Source: Laetmonice hystrix (taxonomy: Eukaryota). Taken from it: 64,000 nt of DNA. The first letter of the stretch is position 1. Each line of letters begins with the position of its first letter. Shown here in pieces: positions 2,078-17,962 of the stretch. A program made the translations under genes and the position numbers. Where the stretch lies: assembly GCA_965235115.1 (NCBI GenBank), contig OZ249439.1, forward strand, positions 8,556,001-8,620,000, given 5' to 3'. The notes under the pieces were generated by a model that made no database searches, was not told the DNA's origin, and saw only the letters and a program-made list of their open reading frames with translations.

Positions 2078-2171
2078 CTAGTGATAGCGGTCTTGAAATT
2101 CGTGATGCCACTTGTTAAAGTCGATGTTAAAAACGATAAGACACCCAGTCGCTAGTCCGGCCATCAGATAT
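2078..2171 (-). CDS. NBEA: BEACH gene last coding exon
   Basis: CTCTCCCAG|A TAT CTG...; [33 protein letters not shown] at 2078-2080 followed by a second TAG. Confidence 0.95.
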
Positions 2172-2579
2172 CTGGGAGAGAAAAAAAAATAAAATAAAAA
2201 TTAGTTGTGGATCAACTAGAAAACTCCACTCATCCGTGTATTTAAGGTATCCCGTACATTACAACGAACCACACTCAGAGAAACAAAAAGAAGGCCCTGA
2301 TCCATTAAGACGATTTCCCTTGCGACGGCCAGGCGATTTTTTTATTTCATGATGGAATTTCACTCTGTAACTTTTCCTGGCTGGCCTTCCCTGTTTCTGG
2401 AAATGGGTTCCATCCTTTAATCTTAAAAATCCCAGTAAAATAACAGGGTGATGCCAAAATCGCATTGACATCACAAGGACAATCGCCTCAGTAGATCAGG
2501 GCCTTAACTGTCTCAACTTTTTTCTTTCCAAACTAGAGTGGTAAAATAACGAAGGATTTCTTGATTACGTGTGACCTAC

Positions 2580-2731
2580 TTTTGATCGTGTGAAAGGGCG
2601 AGCGAGCGGACGCTCGAGTCACAGGTAGGGTAGGTGTAGAGGACATTCAGGTCGTGTGTCCGCCAAACCTCGACGATACCGTTATCACCTCCCAACATGA
2701 CGTACTGCCCGTCACGTGACATAATCATACA
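2580..2731 (-). CDS. NBEA: WD40 exon
   Basis: TTTCAG|TGT...CAAAA|GTAGGT; [51 protein letters not shown]; not in ORF track (<60 aa). Confidence 0.94.
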
Positions 2732-2998
2732 CTGAAATCACACCAGAGGGCGCACAAGTCAGCACATGGAATACAACCACCGGATCCCAATCTCAAATTG
2801 GTGGGTCAAAACGGTGTTGAAAAAAAATTGTTGAAACAATGTATTCTTTAAAATATATATTAACACAAGCTGGTTAAAACTTACATTATTAAAGCATAAG
2901 GCACTCTTATCGACCGGGTCCAAATCTTGGCTATTATAACACCATAATACATTCCCTATGCCCGCACTTCATACCGACCGAAGTCTGAGCACACCCAC

Positions 2999-3195
2999 CT
3001 GGACATTGTCGTTGTGAGCGACGTGTCGCAGTAGTTTGCCGTTGATGCCAAACGAACAGAGGGCACCCTTGTCGTAGTTCACGATGATGTAGCCCTCTCG
3101 TGTCATTGTCAGGAACTTCGGCGAGCGGTACACATCTGGTGGTTCTAACGACCGCAAGAGGTCGCCAGTGTTCGAGTGGATCAGGCACGGTCCAT
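2999..3195 (-). CDS. NBEA: WD40 exon
   Basis: TCTTCCAG|AT...CAG|GTGGGT; DGPCLIHSNTGDLLRSLEPPDVYRSPKFLTMTREGYIIVNYDKGALCSFGINGKLLRHVAHNDNVQ. Confidence 0.94.
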
Positions 3196-3364
3196 CTGGA
3201 AGATAGCAAATTGCTGGTGTCAAATTGCTTACAATCTGAGAACGTTCATTTCTTTACCCAGTGGTGTCTGGTGGGAAGATTCTAAAGATGCTTTCGTCAT
3301 TTGCTGTATTTTGCCAGTTGTTACTGTGCCGTCCGTTAGTCAAAGAATGGTTTTATTAGATCCC

Positions 3365-3950
3365 CTGACCACTATAGCAAGTCTTACGTTGTGAGCCACT
3401 GACCACTATAGCAAGTCTTACCTTGTGAGCCACTGACCACTATAGCAAGTCTTACCTTGTGAGCCACTGACCACTATAGCAAGTCTTACCTTGTGAGCCA
3501 CTGACCACTATAGCAAGTCTTACCTTGTGAGCCACTGACCACTATAGCAAGTCTTACCTTGTGAGCCACTGACCACTATAGCAAGTCTTACCTTGTGAGC
3601 CACTGACCACTATAGCAAGCCTTACCTTGTGAGCCACTGACCACTATAGCAAGTCTTACCTTGTGAGCCACTGACCACTATAGCAAGTCTTACCTTGTGA
3701 GCCACTGACCACTATAGCAAGTCTTACCTTGTGAGCCACTGACCACTATAGCAAGTCTTACCTTGTGAGCCACTGACCACTATAGCAAGTCTTACCTTGT
3801 GAGCCACTGACCACTATAGCAAGTCTTACCTTGTGAGCCACTGACCACTATAGCAAGTCTTACCTTGTGAGCCACTGACCACTATAGCAAGTCTTACCTT
3901 GTGAGCCACTGACCACTATAGCAAGTCTTACCTTGTGAGCCACTGACCAC
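3365..3950. repeat. 34-bp minisatellite, ~17 copies, spanning exon 3' end + 5' splice site
   Basis: Unit CTTGTGAGCCACTGACCACTATAGCAAGTCTTAC; 19 nt exon + 15 nt intron on minus strand. Confidence 0.97.
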
Positions 3951-4036
3951 GATACCAAGCTCTGCCGACACTACTACACACGTCACTTCAGATTGATGCC
4001 CGGTCAATGTTGCTTTAGGGGTAGGATCTTCTATAC
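3932..4036 (-). CDS. NBEA: WD40 exon (donor amplified 17x downstream)
   Basis: TTTTCAG|GT...CAAG|GTAAGA; [35 protein letters not shown]. Confidence 0.93.
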
Positions 4037-4395
4037 CTGAAAACGTTTGGGCACACTTGTACGACATGTTACACTCGACTTGACTATGACTGGACTGTGT
4101 GATTGTTTAACACGGTAAAAGACGTGTTTGGGAATAACTTATGCTTAACTAAAAAATTATGCATTCTGTTATTATTACGATAGAAATCACTTTTTAAGTT
4201 CTTATAAAAAAACACACACAAAAACACCAAGGTGACACTTCTGTAAACCCCTAAATTAACGACCTTTTATAGTTTCGCAATTCTTTCACAATTTTGTACC
4301 TAAAGCTTCACGTTTTTCCCGTTCTACCTATTTCACAAAACTTTCATACACTGCCAAAACCGCGAATCAAGGGAACCAAACAGTGTTGTCCTTAC

Positions 4396-4563
4396 TTCCA
4401 TTGTCTCCTAGAATACTCTGCTGTTTGGCATTCCAGTGCCAGACCATGACTGTACAGTCCTTGGAGCCGGTGACGACGTAACAGTCCTGGTTAATGTTAC
4501 ACTCAGACCGTCCTATACACGTCACCACGTCAAAGTGACCATACACCACCTGGCATACCTTGG
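4396..4563 (-). CDS. NBEA: WD40 exon (proximal-acceptor form; 9 more in-frame acceptors up to 5346)
   Basis: TTTACAG|CC...GGAA|GTAAGG; [56 protein letters not shown]. Confidence 0.92.
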
Positions 4564-5368
4564 CTGTAAACAAGTAAAAACGGTTACACTCAGACCGTCC
4601 TATACATGTCACCACGTCAAAGTGACCATACACCACCTGGCATACCTTGGCTGTAAACAAGTAAAAACGGTTACACTCAGACCGTCCTATACACGTCACC
4701 ACGTCAAAGTGACCATACACCACCTGGCATACCTTGGCTGTAAACAAGTAAAAACGGTTACACTCAGACCGTCCTATACACGTCACCACGTCAAAGTGAC
4801 CATACACCACCTGGCATACCTTGGCTGTAAACAAGTAAAAACGGTTACACTCAGACCGTCCTATACACGTCACCACGTCAAAGTGACCATACACCACCTG
4901 GCATACCTTGGCTGTAAACAAGTAAAAACGGTTACACTCAGACCGTCCTATACACGTCACCACGTCAAAGTGACCATACACCACCTGGCATACCTTGGCT
5001 GTAAACAAGTAAAAACGGTTACACTCAGACCGTCCTATACACGTCACCACGTCAAAGTGACCATACACCACCTGGCATACCTTGGCTGTAAACAAGTAAA
5101 AACGGTTACACTCAGACCGTCCTATACACGTCACCACGTCAAAGTGACCATACACCACCTGGCATACCTTGGCTGTAAACAAGTAAAAACGGTTACACTC
5201 AGACCGTCCTATACACGTCACCACGTCAAAGTGACCATACACCACCTGGCATACCTTGGCTGTAAACAAGTAAAAACGGTTACACTCAGACCGTCCTATA
5301 CACGTCACCACGTCAAAGTGACCATACACCACCTGGCATACCTTGGCTGTAAACAAGTAAAAACGGTT
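4496..5368. repeat. 87-bp tandem array, 10 copies, spanning 3' splice site + 68 nt of exon
   Basis: Period 87 (4496, 4583 ... ), near-identical copies, 29-aa repeat in ORF 4367..5371. Confidence 0.97.
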
Positions 5369-5653
5369 CAAATACCGGATTCTGTAACGGGGGACGGGGG
5401 TGGGAAGGGTAAGAGTACACAGGAGGGGGGGGGGCTGCTGTCTGAGACCTTTCTTTACAGGGTCTGAGGTAATTTCCCCCTAAAAGTTGAATTTTAGCAA
5501 GTCAACTGGATCCGGTCCTAATGATATACATGTATCACAAAAAAAGCTCACAAACTTCTTGATATTAATATGTTATTGTCCATCTGTAGTTTTGTTATAT
5601 CGTTTGTGATTGGTTAGGCTGTACGTAAAGGTAATGTGCTCGGAATGCCCTAC

Positions 5654-5809
5654 CAGACTCAGACGAGAAGAGCCGGAAACTCTTATCCCAGAATCCCGCA
5701 GCGAGAATGAACCGATTGTCGGCAGTCGTGATGAACGATGAGTGCGCCACCTTGAGGCGCTGGTCGAAGTTATTACCCAGGGACCGTCGGTGGAGTCCGT
5801 GACCAAACA
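5654..5809 (-). CDS. NBEA: WD40 exon
   Basis: GTTGCAG|TG...TCTG|GTAGGG; VFGHGLHRRSLGNNFDQRLKVAHSSFITTADNRFILAAGFWDKSFRLFSSES. Confidence 0.93.
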
Positions 5810-8082
5810 CTGCAACATGATTGGACGATGTAATCAACCAATCAGCAAACGTCACCGCTATCTCTCCCCTTCCGTGTCTAACGTTGGGAGAATTGTTCCT
5901 CCAAGGTCTAACATATATTTATATAATTTACATGTATATGACAATAGAGAGAAATATATAGGGCTTAATTCTGGATCAATTACTCATAAATAACTTTAGT
6001 AACCATCTTTTCTTATAAATGAAATGAAGATAAGATATAAAGAAGTCTCAATAGAAGCATGCACAAAATATAATTATAAGATAAGAATTTTAATGACAGT
6101 GATAAGAAATCAATAAAATGTCCCAATGGGCTCGCCTCTTCTGTTCTACTTTGTTCCAGATATGAATAATATGTTGATCGTTGGAAACAAACTTTCTGAA
6201 AGCTTCCTTGTGCCCCACATATAAATAAGTCCAGAGCCTCCCTATCGACCTGTAACGGGACCATCGGGTTGGGTAGGCCGGGCAGCTCCCGGGAATAGTT
6301 CGGGAAAACCGGTAATGCTAGCGGGAAAACACACCACCAATTTCTGGGGATGGATGGAGTGTTCATCCATCAAGTGTTCCGACGCTAGCCCAGGAAAAGT
6401 TTGGATTCGACTGCCGATGTAACTGGATTCAGATGGTATCAAAATCTAGGCAGCATGATGCATTGCGTTAGTGTTATTTCAGCAGTACATTTATCCGCGG
6501 TCAGTGGTTTTGATACCAATCTGAACCCTTTTCTTACCTCGCAACATGCAATATAATCCATAGACGGGAATTCTTAAAGTGCATTAAAGTCAGTGCCTCT
6601 GCTAGAGAGCGTGGTAGGATGTTGTCACCTGAATGACTGATATAACGTGCTGTGAGTGCAGTAGCAAAGTCAACGACACCATGAACAATGCTGATGGCAG
6701 TTGTGCAGTCTGGGTTGGACAAGACGGCCAAGCGTCAGAGGAACCGTTATGGTAATTGGATGACTTCCTAGCCAAGGCCCTTTCATCAGCCAATCATATT
6801 CGTGTACACAAACTCACACGGGACGTCATGGTGTAGACAACATGTGTTGTGTCGTAGTGTAGACGGTGTATTAATCAATAAACATTCCAGGATGGCATTC
6901 AGTCTACTCACTAATGGACGAGAGCGACAAGTCCGTCAGAGATTCAACACTCGACAGGATTATAAAGGGGTTAAACTGATGTGCAAAAAATGTGCGTAAA
7001 ACCGAGTGTATGAGGGAGAGGTGGTATAAAACTGGGAAGGTATGGACTACAGTGTTCTATAGGTATGTCTCTAAAATACACAAAGTACACAATGGAAACG
7101 GTCGCAACTGTCACAAGTCAAGATTCAACCAGAGATGGAGCATCGGAAATAGAATAAAAGATACTCTACTGGTCTAAACCAAGCCATGAACGAGTCTAGC
7201 AGGAGGGAGGTACCAACGATACTAAACATTATGCCAACGCGACATGAGACGCACGATGCTACTGGACGCAACTATCAACCAATGAAAACCCATGTAACAT
7301 AACGCTGCGTCACTCGACGCACACGTCGGGAGTCACGCATGCGCAAACCAATACCTGTCGACTCATCTTTGGGGGGAATGAAAACGAGGTCGAGGATGAA
7401 AAAGAAAAGAGAACAAATGCCATTCAATACAAAACATAAAGTACGTTTGTTGTATTGTGTTGTGACCAGTAAACGTGCAGAGATACTGTATTTTCATGAA
7501 TGCAAGGACGTTACAAACTGGTACAACCCAGTCACAGTTACATTACGGAAAGAAAACACGCCACACGACCACGACAAGGACAAGTTCCTCTTCCACATTT
7601 ACTACATGTTTTCAAACGTTTTGTTCTCCTGACAAGTATGGGACTGTGTTTCTGTGTGTTATCAAACGACCTGGGTTTTTCCTTATCGCCCCATGCACAA
7701 TTAGTTCGTGCCTGACATCGTGTCGATGGAAAACTCCAACTTTTCCCATCGAAACTCGACTTGATATGCTGAACTGCTGGACAGACACAATAATTCCTAA
7801 GCAGAACACAAGGTGGCGCTTCCATCTTATTCTTAAAATACAAATTAAATGCAAACACAACGCAGCTCAGGCTCTAATAAAGCTATTTAATGAATATAAT
7901 CATTGACAAAAATATACTTTTTAGGACATGGTTGCTTGCAATTAGTGATCACTTTGTTGACATACACTTCTGGTTTATAATATAAAATATCTCACCAAGA
8001 ATTGGCAGTTTCTCAGAAATGTTTGTCATTTTTCCCCAGACAACAAATACTCAGGTTCTTTGGTGGTACGGTGCCCACTTAC

Positions 8083-8154
8083 CGAGTAGCTGGTCCATGG
8101 AGAGAGGAAGCTGTGGCTGAGAGTCCGTCTTCTCCGTGTAACTTGGGGATGGTG
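8083..8154 (-). CDS. NBEA: BEACH-WD40 linker exon
   Basis: TTCTCCAG|CA...CTCG|GTAAGT; APSPSYTEKTDSQPQLPLSMDQLL; phase 1-1, aligns positionally with vertebrate ...HLPIEMDPLI... Confidence 0.85.
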
Positions 8155-8180
8155 CTGGAGAATTGGCTGTTGGTAACAAC

Positions 8181-8730
8181 AATCACGTGTCACATCCCAG
8201 CCAATCAACCACATTCACACATCAACCAATAATCACGTGTCACATCCCAGCCAATCAACCGCATTCATACATCAACCAATAATCACGTGTCACATCCCAA
8301 CCAATCAACCACATTCATACATCAACCAATAATCACGTGTCACATCCCAGCCAATCAACCGCATTCACACATCAACCAGTAATCACGTGTCACATCCTAG
8401 CCAATCAACCACATTCACACATCAACCAATAATCACGTGTCACATCCCAGCCAATCAACCGCATTCACACATCAACCAATAATCACGTGTCACATCCTAG
8501 CCAATCAACCACATTCACACATCAACCAAAAATCACGTGTCACATCCCAGCCAATCAACCACATTCACACATCAACCAATAATCACGTGTCACATCCCAG
8601 CCAATCAACCACATTCACACATCAACCAATAATCACGTGTCACATCCTAGCCAATCAACCACATTCACACATCAACCAATAATCACGTGTCACATCCCAG
8701 CCAATCAACCACATTCATACATCAACCAAT
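8181..8730. repeat. 50-bp minisatellite, 11 copies
   Basis: Unit AATCACGTGTCACATCCCAGCCAATCAACCACATTCACACATCAACCAAT. Confidence 0.96.
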
Positions 8731-9072
8731 CACATCCCTGCTTCCACGTCGAAACGCCAGGAAACCGTGTCTCTTGTCAAAACGCCACATAGATACATAA
8801 ATACATTCACAGCATGTTCCTTCGCTAGTGCTTAAAGAGAGCTACTGCATGACAATTTACAAGTCTGCATTACAAGTAAAAAACTCATTCTAATTACAAA
8901 AGCAAACAGTTTGTGCCAGTTGAATGTATAATTATTGTAACTATCTAGAGAGCTGCTGCCAGGCGGTTCAAACAATGGAGAGATAGATCGCAGAAGTTGT
9001 GTGTTTTAGGAGTATGGTGTGCGCCAGACGAGGGTGGGGGTTAGGTGGGGGTGGGTGGGTGGGATGACGTAC

Positions 9073-9253
9073 CTTTGCCGGCGTTGTGGTTCCACTTATT
9101 GACGGCGAAGTTGTGATTACACGTGATTGTAATGACGGCCGGGGTGGGCACGGCTGGGTGGGTGTTTGCCGACAGGTGGGTGACCGGAGAGTTGGAGAGG
9201 AACTTCATGATCATACACACGTCATCAGGTACCGTCGAGAACATCATTGGAGA
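9073..9253 (-). CDS. NBEA: Linker/WD exon (acceptor amplified 10x upstream)
   Basis: TACTCAG|TCT...AAAG|GTACGT; SPMMFSTVPDDVCMIMKFLSNSPVTHLSANTHPAVPTPAVITITCNHNFAVNKWNHNAGK. Confidence 0.93.
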
Positions 9254-10003
9254 CTGAGTATGTGAAAACATAAACCGACCATCAGATACCTCAGTCTGTA
9301 TCAAGTTCTTAGGTTCTCTGAGATCGGAGACTGAGTACGTGAAACATAAACCGACCATCAGATACCTCAGTCTGTATCAAGTTATTAGGTTCTCTGAGAT
9401 CGGAGACTGAGTACGTGAAAACATAAACCGACCATCAGATACCTCAGTCTGTATCAAGTTCTTAGGTTCTCTGAGATCGGAGACTGAGTATGTGAAAACA
9501 TAAACCGACCATCAGATACCTCAGTCTGTATCAAGTTATTAGGTTCTCGGAGATCGGAGACTGAGTACGTGAAAACATAAACCGACCATCAGATACCTCA
9601 GTCTGTATCAAGTTATTAGGTTCTCTGAGATCGGAGACTGAGTACGTGAAAACATAAACCGACCATCAGATACCTCAGTCTCTATCAAGTTATTAGGTTC
9701 TCTGAGATCGGAGACTGAGTACGTGAAAACATAAACCGACCATCAGATACCTCAGTCTCTATCAAGTTATTAGGTTCTCTGAGATCGGAGACTGAGTACG
9801 TGAAAACATAAACCGACCATCAGATACCTCAGTCTGTATCAAGTTCTTAGGTTCTCTGAGATCGAAAACTGAGTACGTGAAAACATAAACCGACCATCAG
9901 ATACCTCAGTCTGTATTGGTTCTCTGAGATCGGAGACTGAGTACGTGAAAACATAAACCGACTATCAGATACCTCAGTCTGTATCAAGTTCTTAGGTTCT
10001 CTG
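9249..10003. repeat. 77-bp tandem array, ~10 copies, spanning 3' splice site + 5 nt of exon
   Basis: Acceptor CT(plus) at 9254, 9331, 9407, 9484, 9561, 9638, 9715, 9792, 9869, 9937. Confidence 0.96.
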
Positions 10004-10209
10004 ACATACCGCGACCAGAACAGCTCGCAATCACAAACATTTTTTCTCCTTTCAACGACCTGTATTTCGTTTTCCTCATTACGATTTTCCACACTATGAA
10101 TCTGAGTTTTATTTAATTGACCTCAATCAGAACTCAATACATATATTGACATCTCCTTGACTTGTGAATGACTGGAGTTCAATTTTAAGTGAATACTGAA
10201 CTAACTTAC

Positions 10210-10299
10210 GATATGCATGACTGAGTTGCGCGGAGGGTGTGGTTCCGTGAGGAGTTGGGCAGGCGTTTGACCAAAACTACGTATCTGATTCTCTAACGC
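10210..10299 (-). CDS. NBEA: BEACH C-terminal exon
   Basis: TTTTGCAG|GCG...ATC|GTAAGT; [30 protein letters not shown]. Confidence 0.95.
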
Positions 10300-10311
10300 C
10301 TGCAAAACATC

Positions 10312-10486
10312 ATCAACATATTCTTCTTCAAATATCAACATGTTCTTCTTCAAATATCAACATGTTCTTCTTCAATTATCAACATGTTCTTCAATTATCA
10401 ACATGTTCTTCTTTAAATATCAACATGTTCTTCTTCAAATATCAACATGTTCTTCTTCAAATATCAACATGTTCTTCTTCAATTAT
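10312..10486. repeat. ~22-bp minisatellite, ~8 copies
   Basis: Unit ATCAACATGTTCTTCTTCAAAT. Confidence 0.92.
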
Positions 10487-10599
10487 AATTATAGTCGCTT
10501 ACCCTTGTACTTTGGACAATAAAATATTCAACATAATACGGATTTATAGTTAGGGTGGCACAGTGTCAGAGGATTGGGGAATTGTCTCTACCCGCGTCA

Positions 10600-10884
<285 letters not shown>

Positions 10885-10890
10885 TTAACG

Positions 10891-11686
10891 CTGGTCCAAA
10901 CACACATTTCGTAACACCTCCCTGACATATACCATCCACAGCTGACCGTTACACTTACTGGTCCAAACACACACTTCGTAACACCTCCCTGACATATATA
11001 TACCATCCCACAGCTGACTGATACACTTACTGGTCCAAACACACCGTAACACCTCCCTGACATATACCATCCCACAGCTGACCGTTACACTTACTGGCCC
11101 AAACACACACTCATACCTGCCAACATTTGGTCGACGGAATCCGGATTCATCCCAAAGTGACTTTTGATACTCTCTCTATGGGCCCCTTTCTTTTATCCAT
11201 CTCTCTCTATTCCTCTCCATTACTGACAGAAAGCACAACTCTGATTTACTAAACTTAGTGTAGAGATCTAGTTATATGGCAGGGACCATAAACGATCTTT
11301 TTGCCAGTGAAACTCTGCCATAAGCGAGAGATTTAACATGTATTTGGAGGGAATCTATACTTATTCTGTAAATTTCATGATTCCGTAATATTTAGAGAGT
11401 AATCCGGAATGCGGAATACCTCATTCAAATGCGGAAAGATTCCGCAGAATGCGGAAGGGTTGGCAGGTATGCACACTTCGTAATACCTCCCTGACATATA
11501 CCATCCCACAGCTGACCGTTACACTTACTGGTCCAAACACACACTTCGTAACACTTCCCTGACATATACCATCCCACAGCTGACCGTTACACTTACTGGC
11601 TCAAACACACACTTCGTAACACCTCCCTGACATATACCATCCCACAGCTGACCGTTACATTTACTGGTCCAAACACACACTTCGTA
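10891..11686. repeat. ~68-bp minisatellite, ~7 copies, interrupted by a MITE
   Basis: Unit GGTCCAAACACACACTTCGTAACACCTCCCTGACATATACCATCCCACAGCTGACCGTTACACTTACT. Confidence 0.94.
11112..11471. mobile_element. Non-autonomous DNA transposon (MITE), 360 bp
   Basis: Perfect 13-bp TIRs CATACCTGCCAAC / GTTGGCAGGTATG; CACACT duplicated on both flanks relative to the uninterrupted repeat unit; subterminal TGCGGAA/TCCGGA motifs. Confidence 0.88.
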
Positions 11687-11823
11687 AATTCTACAATATT
11701 TGTGAACTCTTTTATAACCTCCTTTTACTAAACACCAAATAGTCCCCCCAAATCCCCAGTCGTGGTGGCCCAGAGTGTGGACGTTTCAGACAATTCAGAA
11801 AGTTATTAGGATATAAGACTGAC

Positions 11824-11976
11824 CATTCTGTTCATCCGTACGAAGTCCTCCGCACTGCCGGCCCATGGCGGTAGTTCCACGTTACCGATGTCTACCATCT
11901 CCTCCGTCTTACCCAGATTGTAGCTATTGTTGTTGGTGAACATGTCGGGCAGATAGTAAAACTCTGGGACTAACTC
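11824..11976 (-). CDS. NBEA: BEACH exon (acceptor duplicated at 12056)
   Basis: ATTACAG|GAG...ATG|GTCAGT; ELVPEFYYLPDMFTNNNSYNLGKTEEMVDIGNVELPPWAGSAEDFVRMNRM. Confidence 0.95.
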
Positions 11977-12080
11977 CTGTAATAAACCATACTCGACTCG
12001 TAGCTATTGTTGTTGGTGAACATGTCGGGCAGGTAGTAAAACTCAGGGACTAACTCCTGTAATAAACCATACTCGACTCG
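11921..12080. repeat. 80-bp direct duplication spanning 3' splice site + 56 nt of exon
   Basis: Two copies, 2 differences. Confidence 0.95.
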
Positions 12081-12269
12081 TAAACTAGAACCTTTATGTA
12101 ACAGTGATGTTATAACTTAGGTAGATAGAGGACTCCATCACGGCCCCAGGGTTACGGCAGTATAAGAGTTTTCAGATTATACATTGCTAACCCTGCTGGT
12201 ACTTGTGTAAACCCGACCCCAGCCCAGTAAACCTAGGTTTACGTTCTCACCCCGGTGTGTGTCACTAAC

Positions 12270-12389
12270 CTTGACGTCCGAGGTATCTCTCTGACAGTTT
12301 TTCCACGCTGCTGCCACTGAGTGGAAGGTTCGGTTAGCGTGATCAAACTTTCCACCCTGTAGGTGGAGGAAGAATGACGTGAAGGGTTC
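12270..12389 (-). CDS. NBEA: BEACH exon
   Basis: GTTCCAG|GAA...AAG|GTTAGT; [40 protein letters not shown]. Confidence 0.96.
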
Positions 12390-12694
12390 CTGGAACAATC
12401 ACAAGTCAATCGTAACCATTGACTGGGGAGAGCGAGAGGGACGCAACAAATTCAACTTTTCCTGTACTACTCATACACTGCCTGCTTCCAGCGACCAATT
12501 CCATATACTACTTGGCAACGACTGACCGCATGGGCAGACCTACCTGACAATGATGCGACTTTTTAAAAACAAAAAAAAAACCCTCCCTTGGAAATTGCTG
12601 ATATCGATCAGTTCTTTCCCTACTTGAAGTTGTGCGTTTGATATTTCAGATCCTGTTTGAGGGTGTGAATTTACTGGTTTCCATGGTAACATAC

Positions 12695-12835
12695 CAGTCG
12701 GATGAGCCAGTTGAGAGTGAAGGCGGCTGTCGAGTAGTGAGTACCGTAATGGAATGGTGGGATCTGGTCGTGCTCCCACTGCTGGTAACGTTCTTCAAAG
12801 AACGCCTTCCGAGTCGGGTTGAGGGCTCCGATCGG
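12695..12835 (-). CDS. NBEA: BEACH exon
   Basis: TTGCCAG|CCG...CTG|GTATGT; [47 protein letters not shown]. Confidence 0.96.
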
Positions 12836-13162
12836 CTGGCAACATAACGAACGCCGGTCAACAACCACAACAACCATAACCACAACCGCAACAACAATAT
12901 CACCATGATTCTTGCAAACGATAATGATAAAATATCAATGGTAATAACATCCCATACAATCCGATACCAATCTTTCTATTATGTATTTTTGCCCACGTTA
13001 TTACACAAAGTCTCTGTACGGTGAAACCCCTGGAGAACTGCATTATGAACTTGTAATCGGAAAACTAACCTGAAAAATCTTGAAATCTTTTTTGAAAGGG
13101 AGTTGGTGGTAATATGAGAAAACATGACAAAACCACTCAACTACATCATAAAATTAAAACTA

Positions 13163-13521
<359 letters not shown>

Positions 13522-13599
13522 CGGTACATCAATCAATTCATGTCTAGCCAAGAAAACCTCAGCGAGTGACACTCCTGGTCTGGCGGTGTTTAAATCAAT

Positions 13600-13613
13600 C
13601 CACTAGGTGGCGC
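13600..13613 (+). promoter_or_regulatory. CTCF-like motif
   Basis: CCACTAGGTGGCGC, full match to CCASYAGRKGGCRS. Confidence 0.55.
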
Positions 13614-13829
13614 TATGGGTTTGAACTGGGATCTGCGGTGTCGCCCCCTACCAGCATTTACATGGACTATCGTCTGCACAGTCCTGCTGTTCCGAACCAC
13701 ATACCCTGCCCGTTACTGCCTTATTTAGAAACACCCTGGAGAACAGGGGTCGGGGAGAATAGGGATCATGTAACACCGCTCCCCCTATCTCTCTACCCCC
13801 CCCCCCCCGGCCGCCCAAACTGTCCGTAC

Positions 13830-13932
13830 CTGGTCTGAGGCAGTCCATACTTGACCCCGACCCCGACACGGGGCAGGGCGCTGTTGACCTTCTTGGCCGT
13901 GGCCTGGTCCGGGAAGGCAAACATGACGGCAG
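13830..13932 (-). CDS. NBEA: PH-domain exon
   Basis: TCTTCCAG|CT...CCAG|GTACGG; [35 protein letters not shown]. Confidence 0.95.
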
Positions 13933-15027
13933 CTGGAAGAAATCATCCATGACATGGTTACTCTAAAAACTCTATTTCATAGAAAGTGAGAAAGTGCTAC
14001 TACTAATTTCGACGCAGCATCAGTCACGTTTAGAAAGAGAAATCCTTTCCAGGGATTTATTTTTATTTCCCTTTTATTTCCTTTAACAGAAAATGTTTCG
14101 ACGGCTCTGTAGGTCCTAGGGCTATAAGGGTTCCACAATCTTGATAGCTAAAATGGTGTTTTATTATGCTATAAATGTACACACACTACGTACATACTGA
14201 AACATAACGATTAAATCGGTGTTCGCCCAACATGGCATGATGATATAAGTTGCATGTTCATGACACCGCACATTGTCTCGATGTCATGATAACCACTTCT
14301 CACACCAGAGGGCACCACAGTACGACACTGTGCGACATAAACCGGCGACCAACCATCGCCAAGGTCACAGAGGTCGAATCCTCTTGGCAGACGAGGTAAT
14401 ACTAGTACATTGGGTCGTAACTCTGCATGCCAAGAGTTGTTTGAAGATAACTTCCTGTCAGCAAGTGGCGGGAAGGATCCCAAATGTTCACTTGACACGT
14501 TACCATGTTGGGTCGCCTCCAAGAGTCACGATAAGGATCTCAGTAGTACGATACTAGCTTGTCGTCTGGGTGCTCTCTAATAGGGAGGTGTGACAAAGGT
14601 TAAACATGTCGAGAAAGTCTGCCATCCTTGGTTACTATGGGAACCCTGACTAGAACGTTGTGTGACACGGACATTTGGAACGCAAGTCTTCCCCAAACCG
14701 AGGCCAGCTGACATCCAGCCAGTCCTTGGGAAGCCTGAACCATAAAGTTTAACGAGGGACATGGTTTGTCATCTCTTCTTGGAAACATCTCTGTAAAATG
14801 GCACTTTCAAAGAAATACTCCTGCAGGTCCACGTATTCTTATCTTATTTTCCTAATTATCCTAATTGCCCACAAACCTCGCCCAAGAGCATTCAAAGGTT
14901 AATGACATAGAAACAGGAAAATGTAATACACACATTATTCTATTGCCCCCTCTGATATTATACCATTTGAAGTGCTTCCACCCCCCCCCCCCCCCCTCCA
15001 CCCGCCGGTCTCAGGGACGTCACTTAC

Positions 15028-15145
15028 TCCGCGAAGCCATGAAGATCTCGATGGCCGTGTTCTGTAGAAGGTATCGTCGGGAGAAGATGGCGCGGATCTC
15101 GTTGAAATGCCATTTTCCGTGTAAATGATCGACGTAGGCCAACAC
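15028..15145 (-). CDS. NBEA: PH-domain exon (acceptor duplicated at 15241)
   Basis: GTTACAG|GTG...CGGA|GTAAGT; [39 protein letters not shown]. Confidence 0.95.
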
Positions 15146-15316
15146 CTGTAACACACGAACAGACAGATCCTGGTAAGGTCAGCAGAGGGACAATGAACAT
15201 TATGACATCACAAACAATGCATGATCGACGTAGGCCAACACCTGTAACACACGAACAGACAGATCCTGGTAAGGTCAGCAGAGGGACAATGAACATTATG
15301 ACATCACAAACAATGC
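15125..15316. repeat. 96-bp direct duplication spanning 3' splice site + 21 nt of exon
   Basis: Two identical copies starting 15125 and 15221. Confidence 0.95.
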
Positions 15317-17962
15317 ATTCTTTCGTTCCAAACGGACTCTATCGAGGGAACGCATAGAAAGTATTGGAACCCAGCTGGTGGCGCCTCCACGCGAGCACCT
15401 CGGTACTAACGCCACACAAAAACCCAGGCCTCCCGACATTTTATTTTTTCACCAAGTATTGTACACGGTTTGTAATAGTCAGTAATTATCATGAAAACAT
15501 AAACCCTACTTGACTGATCAAAAAAGATCTACTCGGTGATTTCTTTGACTAGCGGCCATACATTAAACCTAAAAACGTTGAAAGAGCTCCAGTCCAACCA
15601 GATACGATTGACAACTTAAATTTCTCCTGACATATTATATAGACAACCCTCCAGCTTTACACGTGGCTCTCCCCGGCAGCCAGGAGCCATTCTATGATCT
15701 CAGACAGATTAGCCAATCCTACCAACCACCTAAATCTGCTCCATTATATCTACTCTATATAGAAACCCCTCCCCAGACGAGACCACAGAGTGAGAGGTTT
15801 ACAGGGACCGGCGAGTTGTATGTAACGATCAGCGGAGATCCATCACCAGGTCTGATGACAGTGATGGAGAGAGTTGGATCTCTCATAGTTTAACCTCAAA
15901 CACGACCATCAATCACCATAGATATGACAGATCACCTGTCAGTCCGCCGTCCAGGGACCAGTACCGTCCGCTGCCACCAGAGGGAGCCCCACCAGGGAGA
16001 CGCCGTCTTATTTTTACGCACGGAAACGTCATTTTTTAATGCCCTATTAAATTGTGATTCTATGGCCCTGAGAGTTATGCATTCACGGTCCCAGGATCAG
16101 TTTATGGCATGTATAAAGGGGTAAAAATATTCACCCTTTGGGAAGTTCTGACCAAAGCGGATGTTGTGCTGGCGTGCATCCTCATGGTGTGGCATAACCA
16201 ATATTCATCAGCTAATTGGTTGAATTATCTGCCGGTAATATATACCCGTAGATAGAATTACCACTCTCTGTACAGATTCGTCACCTTCCTAACAACCCGT
16301 GGCATACTCTGCCTCTTCCAGTCGGCCGTCCAATATTTTGACACGACCAGTAACCGACCCGCGTGTAAGAACGCTGTCAAAAAACACGTGCGCGCCACAT
16401 TTCGCGCCCATTTTCCAAGGAGCAGACGACCCAAGAGTCTAACCCATTGAGCGAGCAAGGCGGCACGAGCGCGTTTGTTTATTTGCGCGGACTCTCTTGT
16501 TGCGCGCAGACCAGCAGTGCTATCCGTCAACCAAGTCGTTACCCAGGTTACCAACACAAACAGTGCCCACACTGATGGCATACACATTTTGTAGCCACAA
16601 CACAACGTTCAACCGAGGGGCGATCATGAGCCGAGACACCGCTACATCCTGTACGACCCTATAGGAACGCTATAGAAAAATACGAGCCTTCTCGCCACAC
16701 CCTATAAAATGGGACTCGACATTTACAACCCAATGTTTTAACAGCTTGAGTGCGGTATTTTCAAATGTAAAAGCAATCGTGACCAAAAAAAAGAAGAAAA
16801 AAATAGAAAACATTCCTAATTTGACTGTAGAGTCATACTAGCCCCCTTTTTGCTGTTGTCGGTCGTGGTGAAAGGTTTCCATTCCCACGGGCGAACGCTC
16901 TAGCCGGAAGTCGGAGTGCGGAGAGAGATGTATAGCGTCTGGTATACTTGTGGTATGTTATCATCATAACGAAGTTAAATCGTTATCTCTAGAGCCCGGA
17001 GACGGGTGTTCCTACCTCAGCGTGGCTATGATTTCTCAAGGATATATTACATGGGAGTATACGTTACCCTGGGTCGTATCGCTCTAACAAAAACAAGCCA
17101 GTAAAAACAGAACAGTTGCAAGTTTTGTTGTTATTGAATCACTCAATTGTCAGTGCCGACAGGTCTTTGTAAATGGAAACGACGTCTGCATTTACCTTTA
17201 TAATCATAGTCATATTGAGCGAGGATAAAAATGAACTATGTCTGCCCCACCTGGACACTAGACAGGTGCGGCTTTATATCCCAGACGATAACAGTTCAGG
17301 CTTTTGGATCCTTATCTGGGCTGGATGATTACATCATGAGGACTGTGGTTGGCATTGTGTTGTCTTCACCGGACAATGAGACAACGATGCAATTACATCT
17401 AGTTTTCGTCCACTGAGAGTTCTATCAAAGGAGCCCCGGAAACCGGTGCTACAGTATCCAGCCTTCCTTGCTAACAGGCAATGCATCACTGTGGTATCAG
17501 TAATTACCTCTCTCGTTAAAAAAAAACAAAGAAAAAAGCTTTTCAACCCAGCCACCAAAATCTGCTGAGCTTCCAAATCCTATAGTTATCTATATCTGTG
17601 ACTAGCGCTATTGTTAGACGGATTTAGTTGTGGGTCCTGTAATCAAGCGATGGACTGGCTGGCCGATTACAGCGCCATCTGGACGCGGTGCGGGTTTGAC
17701 CCAAACCGAGCGAGACCTCCGTCCCCCTAGTGGCGACCGGTAGGCCCAATTAGAGCCCACTTACACCGGTCCACTTTACTGTGATTAGCTTCAGTTAACT
17801 AAACACCGATCCTGCTTCAAACACACGCCCAGACACCGCGCCTTGTTCCTAGACCCTCTTATTAAACAACGACTACAACGACACGTTTACACATCAAACC
17901 GTCAAATACGGAAAAATCACTATCATTTAAACAGATCGAGGCAATCAAGGTTTTAACTGGAG

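Follow-up and report, generated by a model that had tools for sequence, protein, structure and literature searches.

Mirage-type minisatellites spanning splice junctions of a neurobeachin/LRBA-like gene in Laetmonice hystrix

Introduction

The original description of the minisatellites called mirages is said to be that of Canestro et al. in 2002. In amphioxus, mirages are tandem repeats that straddle the junction of an exon with an intron, whether at the start or at the end of that exon, and they are known from Adh3, troponin C, the globins BflGb6 and BflGb9, and PGBD5 (PMC3087553, PMC3902484). Genes carrying them are spliced normally, as judged by reverse transcription PCR (RT-PCR), copy number differs between haplotypes, and arrays of this type have been linked by a model to intron gain (PMC3087553, PMC3902484). 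Here, five arrays with this architecture are described from a 64,000-nucleotide stretch of the genome of Laetmonice hystrix (assembly GCA_965235115.1, contig OZ249439.1, positions 8,556,001 to 8,620,000; hereafter the window), where they lie at splice junctions of a gene of the neurobeachin/LRBA type, and they are compared with similar arrays at other loci.

A related case in man is the 37-bp variable number tandem repeat (VNTR) in intron 7 (IVS7) of F7, the first element of which spans the exon/intron boundary, with identical pseudo-donors following the authentic donor (Borensztajn et al., 2006; PMC1557585). Analysis of 50 constructs revealed functional pseudo-donors, but splicing selects the most upstream donor exclusively, by 5′-to-3′ scanning (PMC1557585). 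Tandem duplication is also central to the Rogers model, described for ATP2A1 by Hellsten et al. (2011), in which duplication of an AGGT-containing exon segment gives rise to an intron between the duplicated signals (PMC3265369).

A sequence-only reading of the window, in which the five arrays were first noticed, knew of no named system of this kind. The amphioxus mirages and the F7 VNTR contradict that statement, and in structure the arrays match mirage minisatellites. As in amphioxus, a boundary-spanning unit multiplies AG or GT signals, donor and acceptor cases both occur, units measure from tens of bp to ~160 bp, and the copies are nearly identical. Unlike the amphioxus examples, they belong to another animal lineage and seven of them are found in one gene; a rough unbiased estimate places such arrays at ~4% of junctions, a figure for which no amphioxus equivalent was found. 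Normal splicing and length instability are demonstrated in amphioxus, whereas the arrays described here are known from genomic sequence. The array with the 34-bp unit (A1, below) has the layout of F7, an authentic donor followed by identical pseudo-donors, as read in the assembly; for the acceptor arrays, the majority here, F7 provides no model. In the Rogers/Hellsten route the duplication lies inside an exon and a new intron results, whereas here the end of an existing intron is included, and the intron is merely lengthened, with no new intron position. Strict Rogers-type intron gain was rejected, as each unit holds an existing intron end (AG preceded by a pyrimidine tract, or GTAAG with the intron downstream of it).

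Splice-junction arrays in the window

The final 15 exons of the gene, covering PH_BEACH, BEACH, the WD40 propeller and the stop, occupy 2081..15145 on the minus strand, on which the exons, arrays and other repeats of the window listed below are also read. They were placed using tblastn with full-length BEACH homologues, followed by splice-site scoring and phase compatibility, a few ends being corrected by hand, and Pfam identified the domains. Five arrays had been claimed over 16 exons; the arrays are all at junctions, but the exons that can be placed in the window number 15, with 29 junctions.

Tandem Repeats Finder (TRF) recovered all five arrays where they had been reported, with units of 34, 87, 77, 80 and 96 bp, in 2 to 17.5 head-to-tail copies of 94–100% identity, and a minus-strand register view agrees. 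A genuine exon/intron junction is situated inside every unit, one donor and four acceptors being multiplied. Homologue alignment together with splice refinement confirms that the arrays straddle exon/intron boundaries of the BEACH gene, barely so in A3.

A1 (3365..3959; 34 bp × 17.5, 99%) is the donor array. Its unit joins the terminal 19 nt of a WD40 exon (3932..4036, from tblastn and splice refinement) to 15 nt of intron with the donor CAAG/GTAAG, the slash marking the junction. The true donor follows the exon end at 3932, and downstream of it, in the intron, 15 intact decoys and one weakened decoy (AAC/GT) are spaced at 34 nt; the 17 donors originally counted are therefore present, one of them degraded.

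The remaining four are acceptor arrays. A2 (4496..5368; 87 bp × 10, 99%) has a unit in which the final 20 nt of an intron (a pyrimidine tract and CAG) precede 67–68 nt from the start of another WD40 exon (4396..4563, from tblastn), and nine decoy acceptors lie upstream of the true acceptor, the true exon start being at 4563. This unit corresponds to 29 codons, is in frame and free of stops, with a 334-aa open reading frame (ORF). A3 (9249..10004; 77 bp × 9.9, 94%) has a unit that is nearly all intron, 69–72 nt with only 5–8 nt of exon (exon start 9253), and carries about ten CTCAG acceptor copies; its status as a straddling array is marginal. A4 (11920..12082; 80 bp × 2, 97%) combines 24 nt of intron with 56 nt of exon (exon start 11976), and its two copies differ at two synonymous sites. 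A5 (15125..15318; 96 bp × 2, copies identical, 100%) combines 77 nt of intron with 19–21 nt of the PH_BEACH exon (exon start 15145), and use of its decoy would lead to a stop after 13 codons.

Several properties are common to the five. The additional copies are always on the intron side; of each set, the first donor or the last acceptor is the one attached to the exon body. The copy contiguous with the exon body keeps the frame in every array, as had been stated; in A1, A3, A4 and A5 any decoy, if used, gives a frameshift or an early stop, and the in-frame exception is A2. The splice consensus has an internal and variable offset within the units, none of which ends exactly at a junction. Microhomologies of 2–3 nt, read from the register view, are present at the ends of A2, A4 (3 nt, TAC) and A5, which is the usual mark of slippage-type duplication.

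The gene and its surroundings

Pfam searches of the gene gave PH_BEACH at 6.4e-13, Beach at 4e-28, 2.5e-20 and 1.7e-10, and a weak NBCH_WD40. The domain order expected of a BEACH-domain protein, PH_BEACH followed by BEACH and a C-terminal WD40 propeller, is found here, and the exons are collinear with homologues of 2,300–3,400 aa, retrieved with a single exon, at 50–85% identity per exon. The predicted product is a PH-BEACH-WD40 protein of the neurobeachin/LRBA group. At least 42 exons can be recognised in the gene as a whole, which extends over ~160 kb. The exon preceding the PH_BEACH exon lies ~110 kb upstream, beyond the window, and the window from 15.2 to 64 kb is a single giant intron. 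This ~110-kb intron is dense with minisatellites, and the long ORFs in it derive from repeats. A search for nested genes at 16–64 kb of the window, using ORFs and Pfam, recognised no credible gene.

Three further repeats in the window end shortly before an acceptor of the same gene. Upstream of the exon starting at 10299, a 22-bp array (10312..10486) stops 13 nt before the acceptor and is near but non-spanning; a (CAAT)n microsatellite (13487..13521) comes within 11 nt of the acceptor of the main BEACH exon (exon start 13475), and a 64-bp array (10891..11108) within 31 nt of that at 10860. All three were found by TRF, and contig depth assigns the last to a very high-copy repeat family. This family takes in both the 64/68-bp arrays at 10891–11687 and the sequence separating them, where contigs reach a word depth of 10,000–95,000 versus ~50 in the flanks. 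One haplotype contig omits 10987–11686.

Arrays of the same kind elsewhere

The upstream half of the gene, outside the view of the sequence-only reading, contains two further junction-spanning arrays (positions on the scale of the window, extended beyond it). An acceptor array at 136939–137095 has a 51-bp unit in three copies, in frame and open, and a donor array at 138465–139863 has a 35-nt unit in ~40 copies (TRF period 105). In the same part of the gene, a 41-bp × 26 array at 129957–131030 begins 21 nt past a donor, and its units resemble decayed copies of the donor region in which GT has become TT. It is possibly a former mirage with inactivated decoys.

A blind sample of myosin-head exons, taken by a genome search with Pfam Myosin_head (22 segments, 82 kb, 70 junctions), contained three examples: a donor array of 34 bp × 14, in whose decoys an in-frame TAG immediately precedes the GT (C12:11020408-11023599), and two acceptor arrays, of ~54 bp × 7 (C18:5563968-5567165) and 59 bp × 5.6 (C20:22391381-22394590). 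On another chromosome, a BEACH paralogue situated in a region with 4.8% tandem repeats carries a 162-bp × 2 duplication of an acceptor and 18 nt of exon (C1:12050708-12051025). The total is thus 11 junction-spanning arrays: five in the window, two in the upstream gene, three in myosin exons and one in the BEACH paralogue.

The observation that four of five arrays are at 3′ splice sites holds in the window, but a general preference for acceptors was rejected, as the split over all 11 cases is 8:3 (P 0.23). Two of the eight acceptor arrays, A2 and the 51-bp array, are in frame and open, a fraction that appears to be about chance level. Selection as the cause of the open frame of A2 was rejected on the same ground.

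Outside this genome, the best match to the BEACH exon, a protein of Homalodisca vitripennis (GCA_019364655.1), comes from a gene call running through a 158-bp × 5 array (locus positions 8067–8854). The unit copies the 3′ end of the orthologous exon, the donor and 52 nt of intron. This array adjoins a run of N in a draft genome and may be partly an assembly effect.

Frequency at junctions

TRF detected 111 arrays in the 174 kb surrounding the gene, amounting to 21% of that sequence. This tandem-repeat load (C4 region, 174 kb) is more than four-fold apart from the 4.8% of the region of the BEACH paralogue (C1, 90 kb), and therefore the chance expectation has to be local. The background was taken as the fraction of intron lying under one repeat unit, each array being collapsed to a single unit, and was compared with the coverage of junctions.

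In the part of the gene within the window, 5 of the 29 junctions (17%) are covered, against a background of 5.8–6.4% (P ~0.02); this part is the discovery set, picked for looking striking. Among the 27 upstream exons of the gene there is no excess, with 2/54 junctions (3.7%) against 4.2%. The blind myosin-head sample gave 3/70 against 1.4–1.8% (P 0.05–0.10). In the pooled independent data, 5/124 junctions (4.0%) are covered where 2.3–2.6% is expected (P 0.11–0.17), and inclusion of the BEACH paralogue gives ~6/136, or 4.4% (95% interval 1.6–9.4%). An enrichment at junctions beyond the general density of minisatellites is accordingly seen in the window but does not reach significance in independent material. 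These counts suggest that the cluster of five arrays in the window is largely the upper tail of a high genome-wide background, its apparent excess being partly a selection effect. As a rough estimate, ~4% of junctions (~1 in 25) carry such an array genome-wide.

Origin of the arrays and alternative explanations

We consider, with a probability of roughly 70%, that the arrays are mirage-type minisatellites formed by ordinary tandem duplications that happen to include a junction, and that they are a tolerated by-product rather than a device. The duplications would be born with 2–3 nt microhomologies and then expanded via slippage or unequal exchange; the high identity of the copies and the short microhomologies at the ends of A2, A4 and A5 count for a recent origin. 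The copies would grow into the intron, leaving the true donor upstream of all its copies and the true acceptor downstream of all of its own, both joined to the exon body, and the spliceosome would keep using this contiguous site. For donors, such use would follow the 5′-to-3′ scanning rule seen for human F7. In the case of acceptors, the complete exon body may contain enhancers that favour the nearest upstream site, and by analogy the usage in amphioxus globins points that way; to our knowledge, no rule like F7 scanning has been demonstrated for 3′ sites. Occasional use of a decoy would produce a frameshift or stop, to be cleared by nonsense-mediated decay (NMD), and the arrays would persist as nearly neutral passengers with drifting copy number. 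The earlier suggestion that selection tolerates the decoys is plausible, since these are on the intron side and mostly give premature stops.

Two sets of observations weigh against this explanation. The first concerns the choice of acceptor. In A2, A4 and the 51-bp array the intron part of the unit is as short as 16–24 nt, all copies probably lie downstream of the native branch point, and use of the last acceptor is therefore not self-evident. A motif resembling a branch point, within the stretch of the unit that comes from the exon, may serve instead; alternatively the first acceptor may be used, and the propeller would then gain nine inserts of 29 residues from A2. The second concerns placement. 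In the independent set, 12 arrays start less than 100 nt from a junction against 5.8 expected from the rate deeper in introns (P 0.016), and arrays that straddle a junction or lie within 60 nt of one number 15 against 6.2 expected (P 0.002). Furthermore, the exon share of the unit is 17–21 nt in 6 of the 11 arrays (units 34–162 bp) where ~1.1 would be expected (look-elsewhere P ~0.004), a post hoc pattern with n = 11. The crowding at junctions and the clustering at 17–21 nt suggest that the placement of arrays is not wholly random.

This second set leads to the proposal, made in part by the sequence-only reading, that a mutational process targets junctions. Tandem duplications would then arise preferentially at or beside splice junctions, with polymerase pausing, R-loops, exon-positioned nucleosomes or fragile pyrimidine tracts as candidate causes, and mirages would be over-produced while still functionless. 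The excess in the window is in line with it, as is the density of array starts in the unbiased set, which is 2.9 times higher less than 60 nt from a junction than more than 100 nt away, although the far-intron rate used in such comparisons may be too low, with unknown exons and locus edges in that zone. The donor-adjacent 41-bp array with its decayed copies implies that some near arrays are former straddlers. A two- to three-fold crowding within 60–100 nt (P 0.016 to 0.002) stands on one side, while the strict junction count in independent data is non-significant, the upstream half of the gene (2/54) shows a flat profile, and the junction has a varying offset within the units, with no unit ending at it. 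Taken together, a preference of duplications for junctions seems to us rather doubtful as the source of the arrays, and it is likewise rather unlikely that a true bias of about 2–3 fold within 60 nt exists with one breakpoint preferentially 17–21 nt inside the exon.

The arrays had also been proposed to act as splicing/NMD rheostats, with copy number tuning the share of productive mRNA; alternatively, A2 might code for a variable insert of 29 residues within the WD40 propeller. The identity of the decoy sequences with the true sites is compatible with a functional role, as are the open frames of A2 and the 51-bp array. However, the in-frame fraction is no higher than chance predicts, and the 29-residue unit, from its Pfam placement, comprises translated intron together with a piece of a WD40 blade, nine inserts of which would probably break the propeller. 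The arrays are young (94–100% identical) and have a different unit at each site, similar ones occur in unrelated genes at ~4% of junctions, and the decoys are silent in the known systems, amphioxus and F7. A functional role for the decoys is accordingly very improbable; the rheostat is unsupported and unnecessary for explaining the arrays.

As to the reality of the DNA, three sequencing runs from one sample, none of them RNA, cover the stretch, and contigs built from them were aligned with 9400–15399. They match the array sequences at ≥95% identity and break inside the repeats, as k-mer contigs must. None of these contigs crosses A4 or A5 with a single-copy joint. At the edge of A4, position 12115 is connected back to 12049 in one contig; copies cannot be counted from contigs of this kind. 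A second haplotype differs by 28 substitutions and several indels over 1.5 kb (13666–15154), a divergence of ~2%, and hence the sequenced animal is highly heterozygous. That the extra copies, or their number, were created by the assembler is hardly credible: the contigs come from the same sample only, but they were built independently and fit the arrays, the assembly is chromosome-scale (627 Mb in 35 contigs) with arrays below 1 kb, and the same architecture recurs at multiple other loci (the upstream gene, the myosin exons and the BEACH paralogue).

Implications

As a single locus, the arrays of the neurobeachin-like gene add little to what is known of mirages, and the main value of the analysis is the estimate of scale, about one junction in 25. 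If duplications were in fact biased towards junctions, a chromatin-, transcription- or splicing-coupled mutational mechanism would be indicated, and, with ~1/25 of junctions carrying identical decoys, this species would be a natural genome-wide experiment on the choice of the spliceosome among identical sites. The earlier view of the arrays as raw material for intron gain agrees with the way such arrays are discussed in the literature (PMC3087553), and they constitute a large standing pool of substrates for intron lengthening, exon extension or intron gain. A frequency of ~4% of junctions would mean thousands of natural competition experiments for the choice of 5′ and especially 3′ splice sites.

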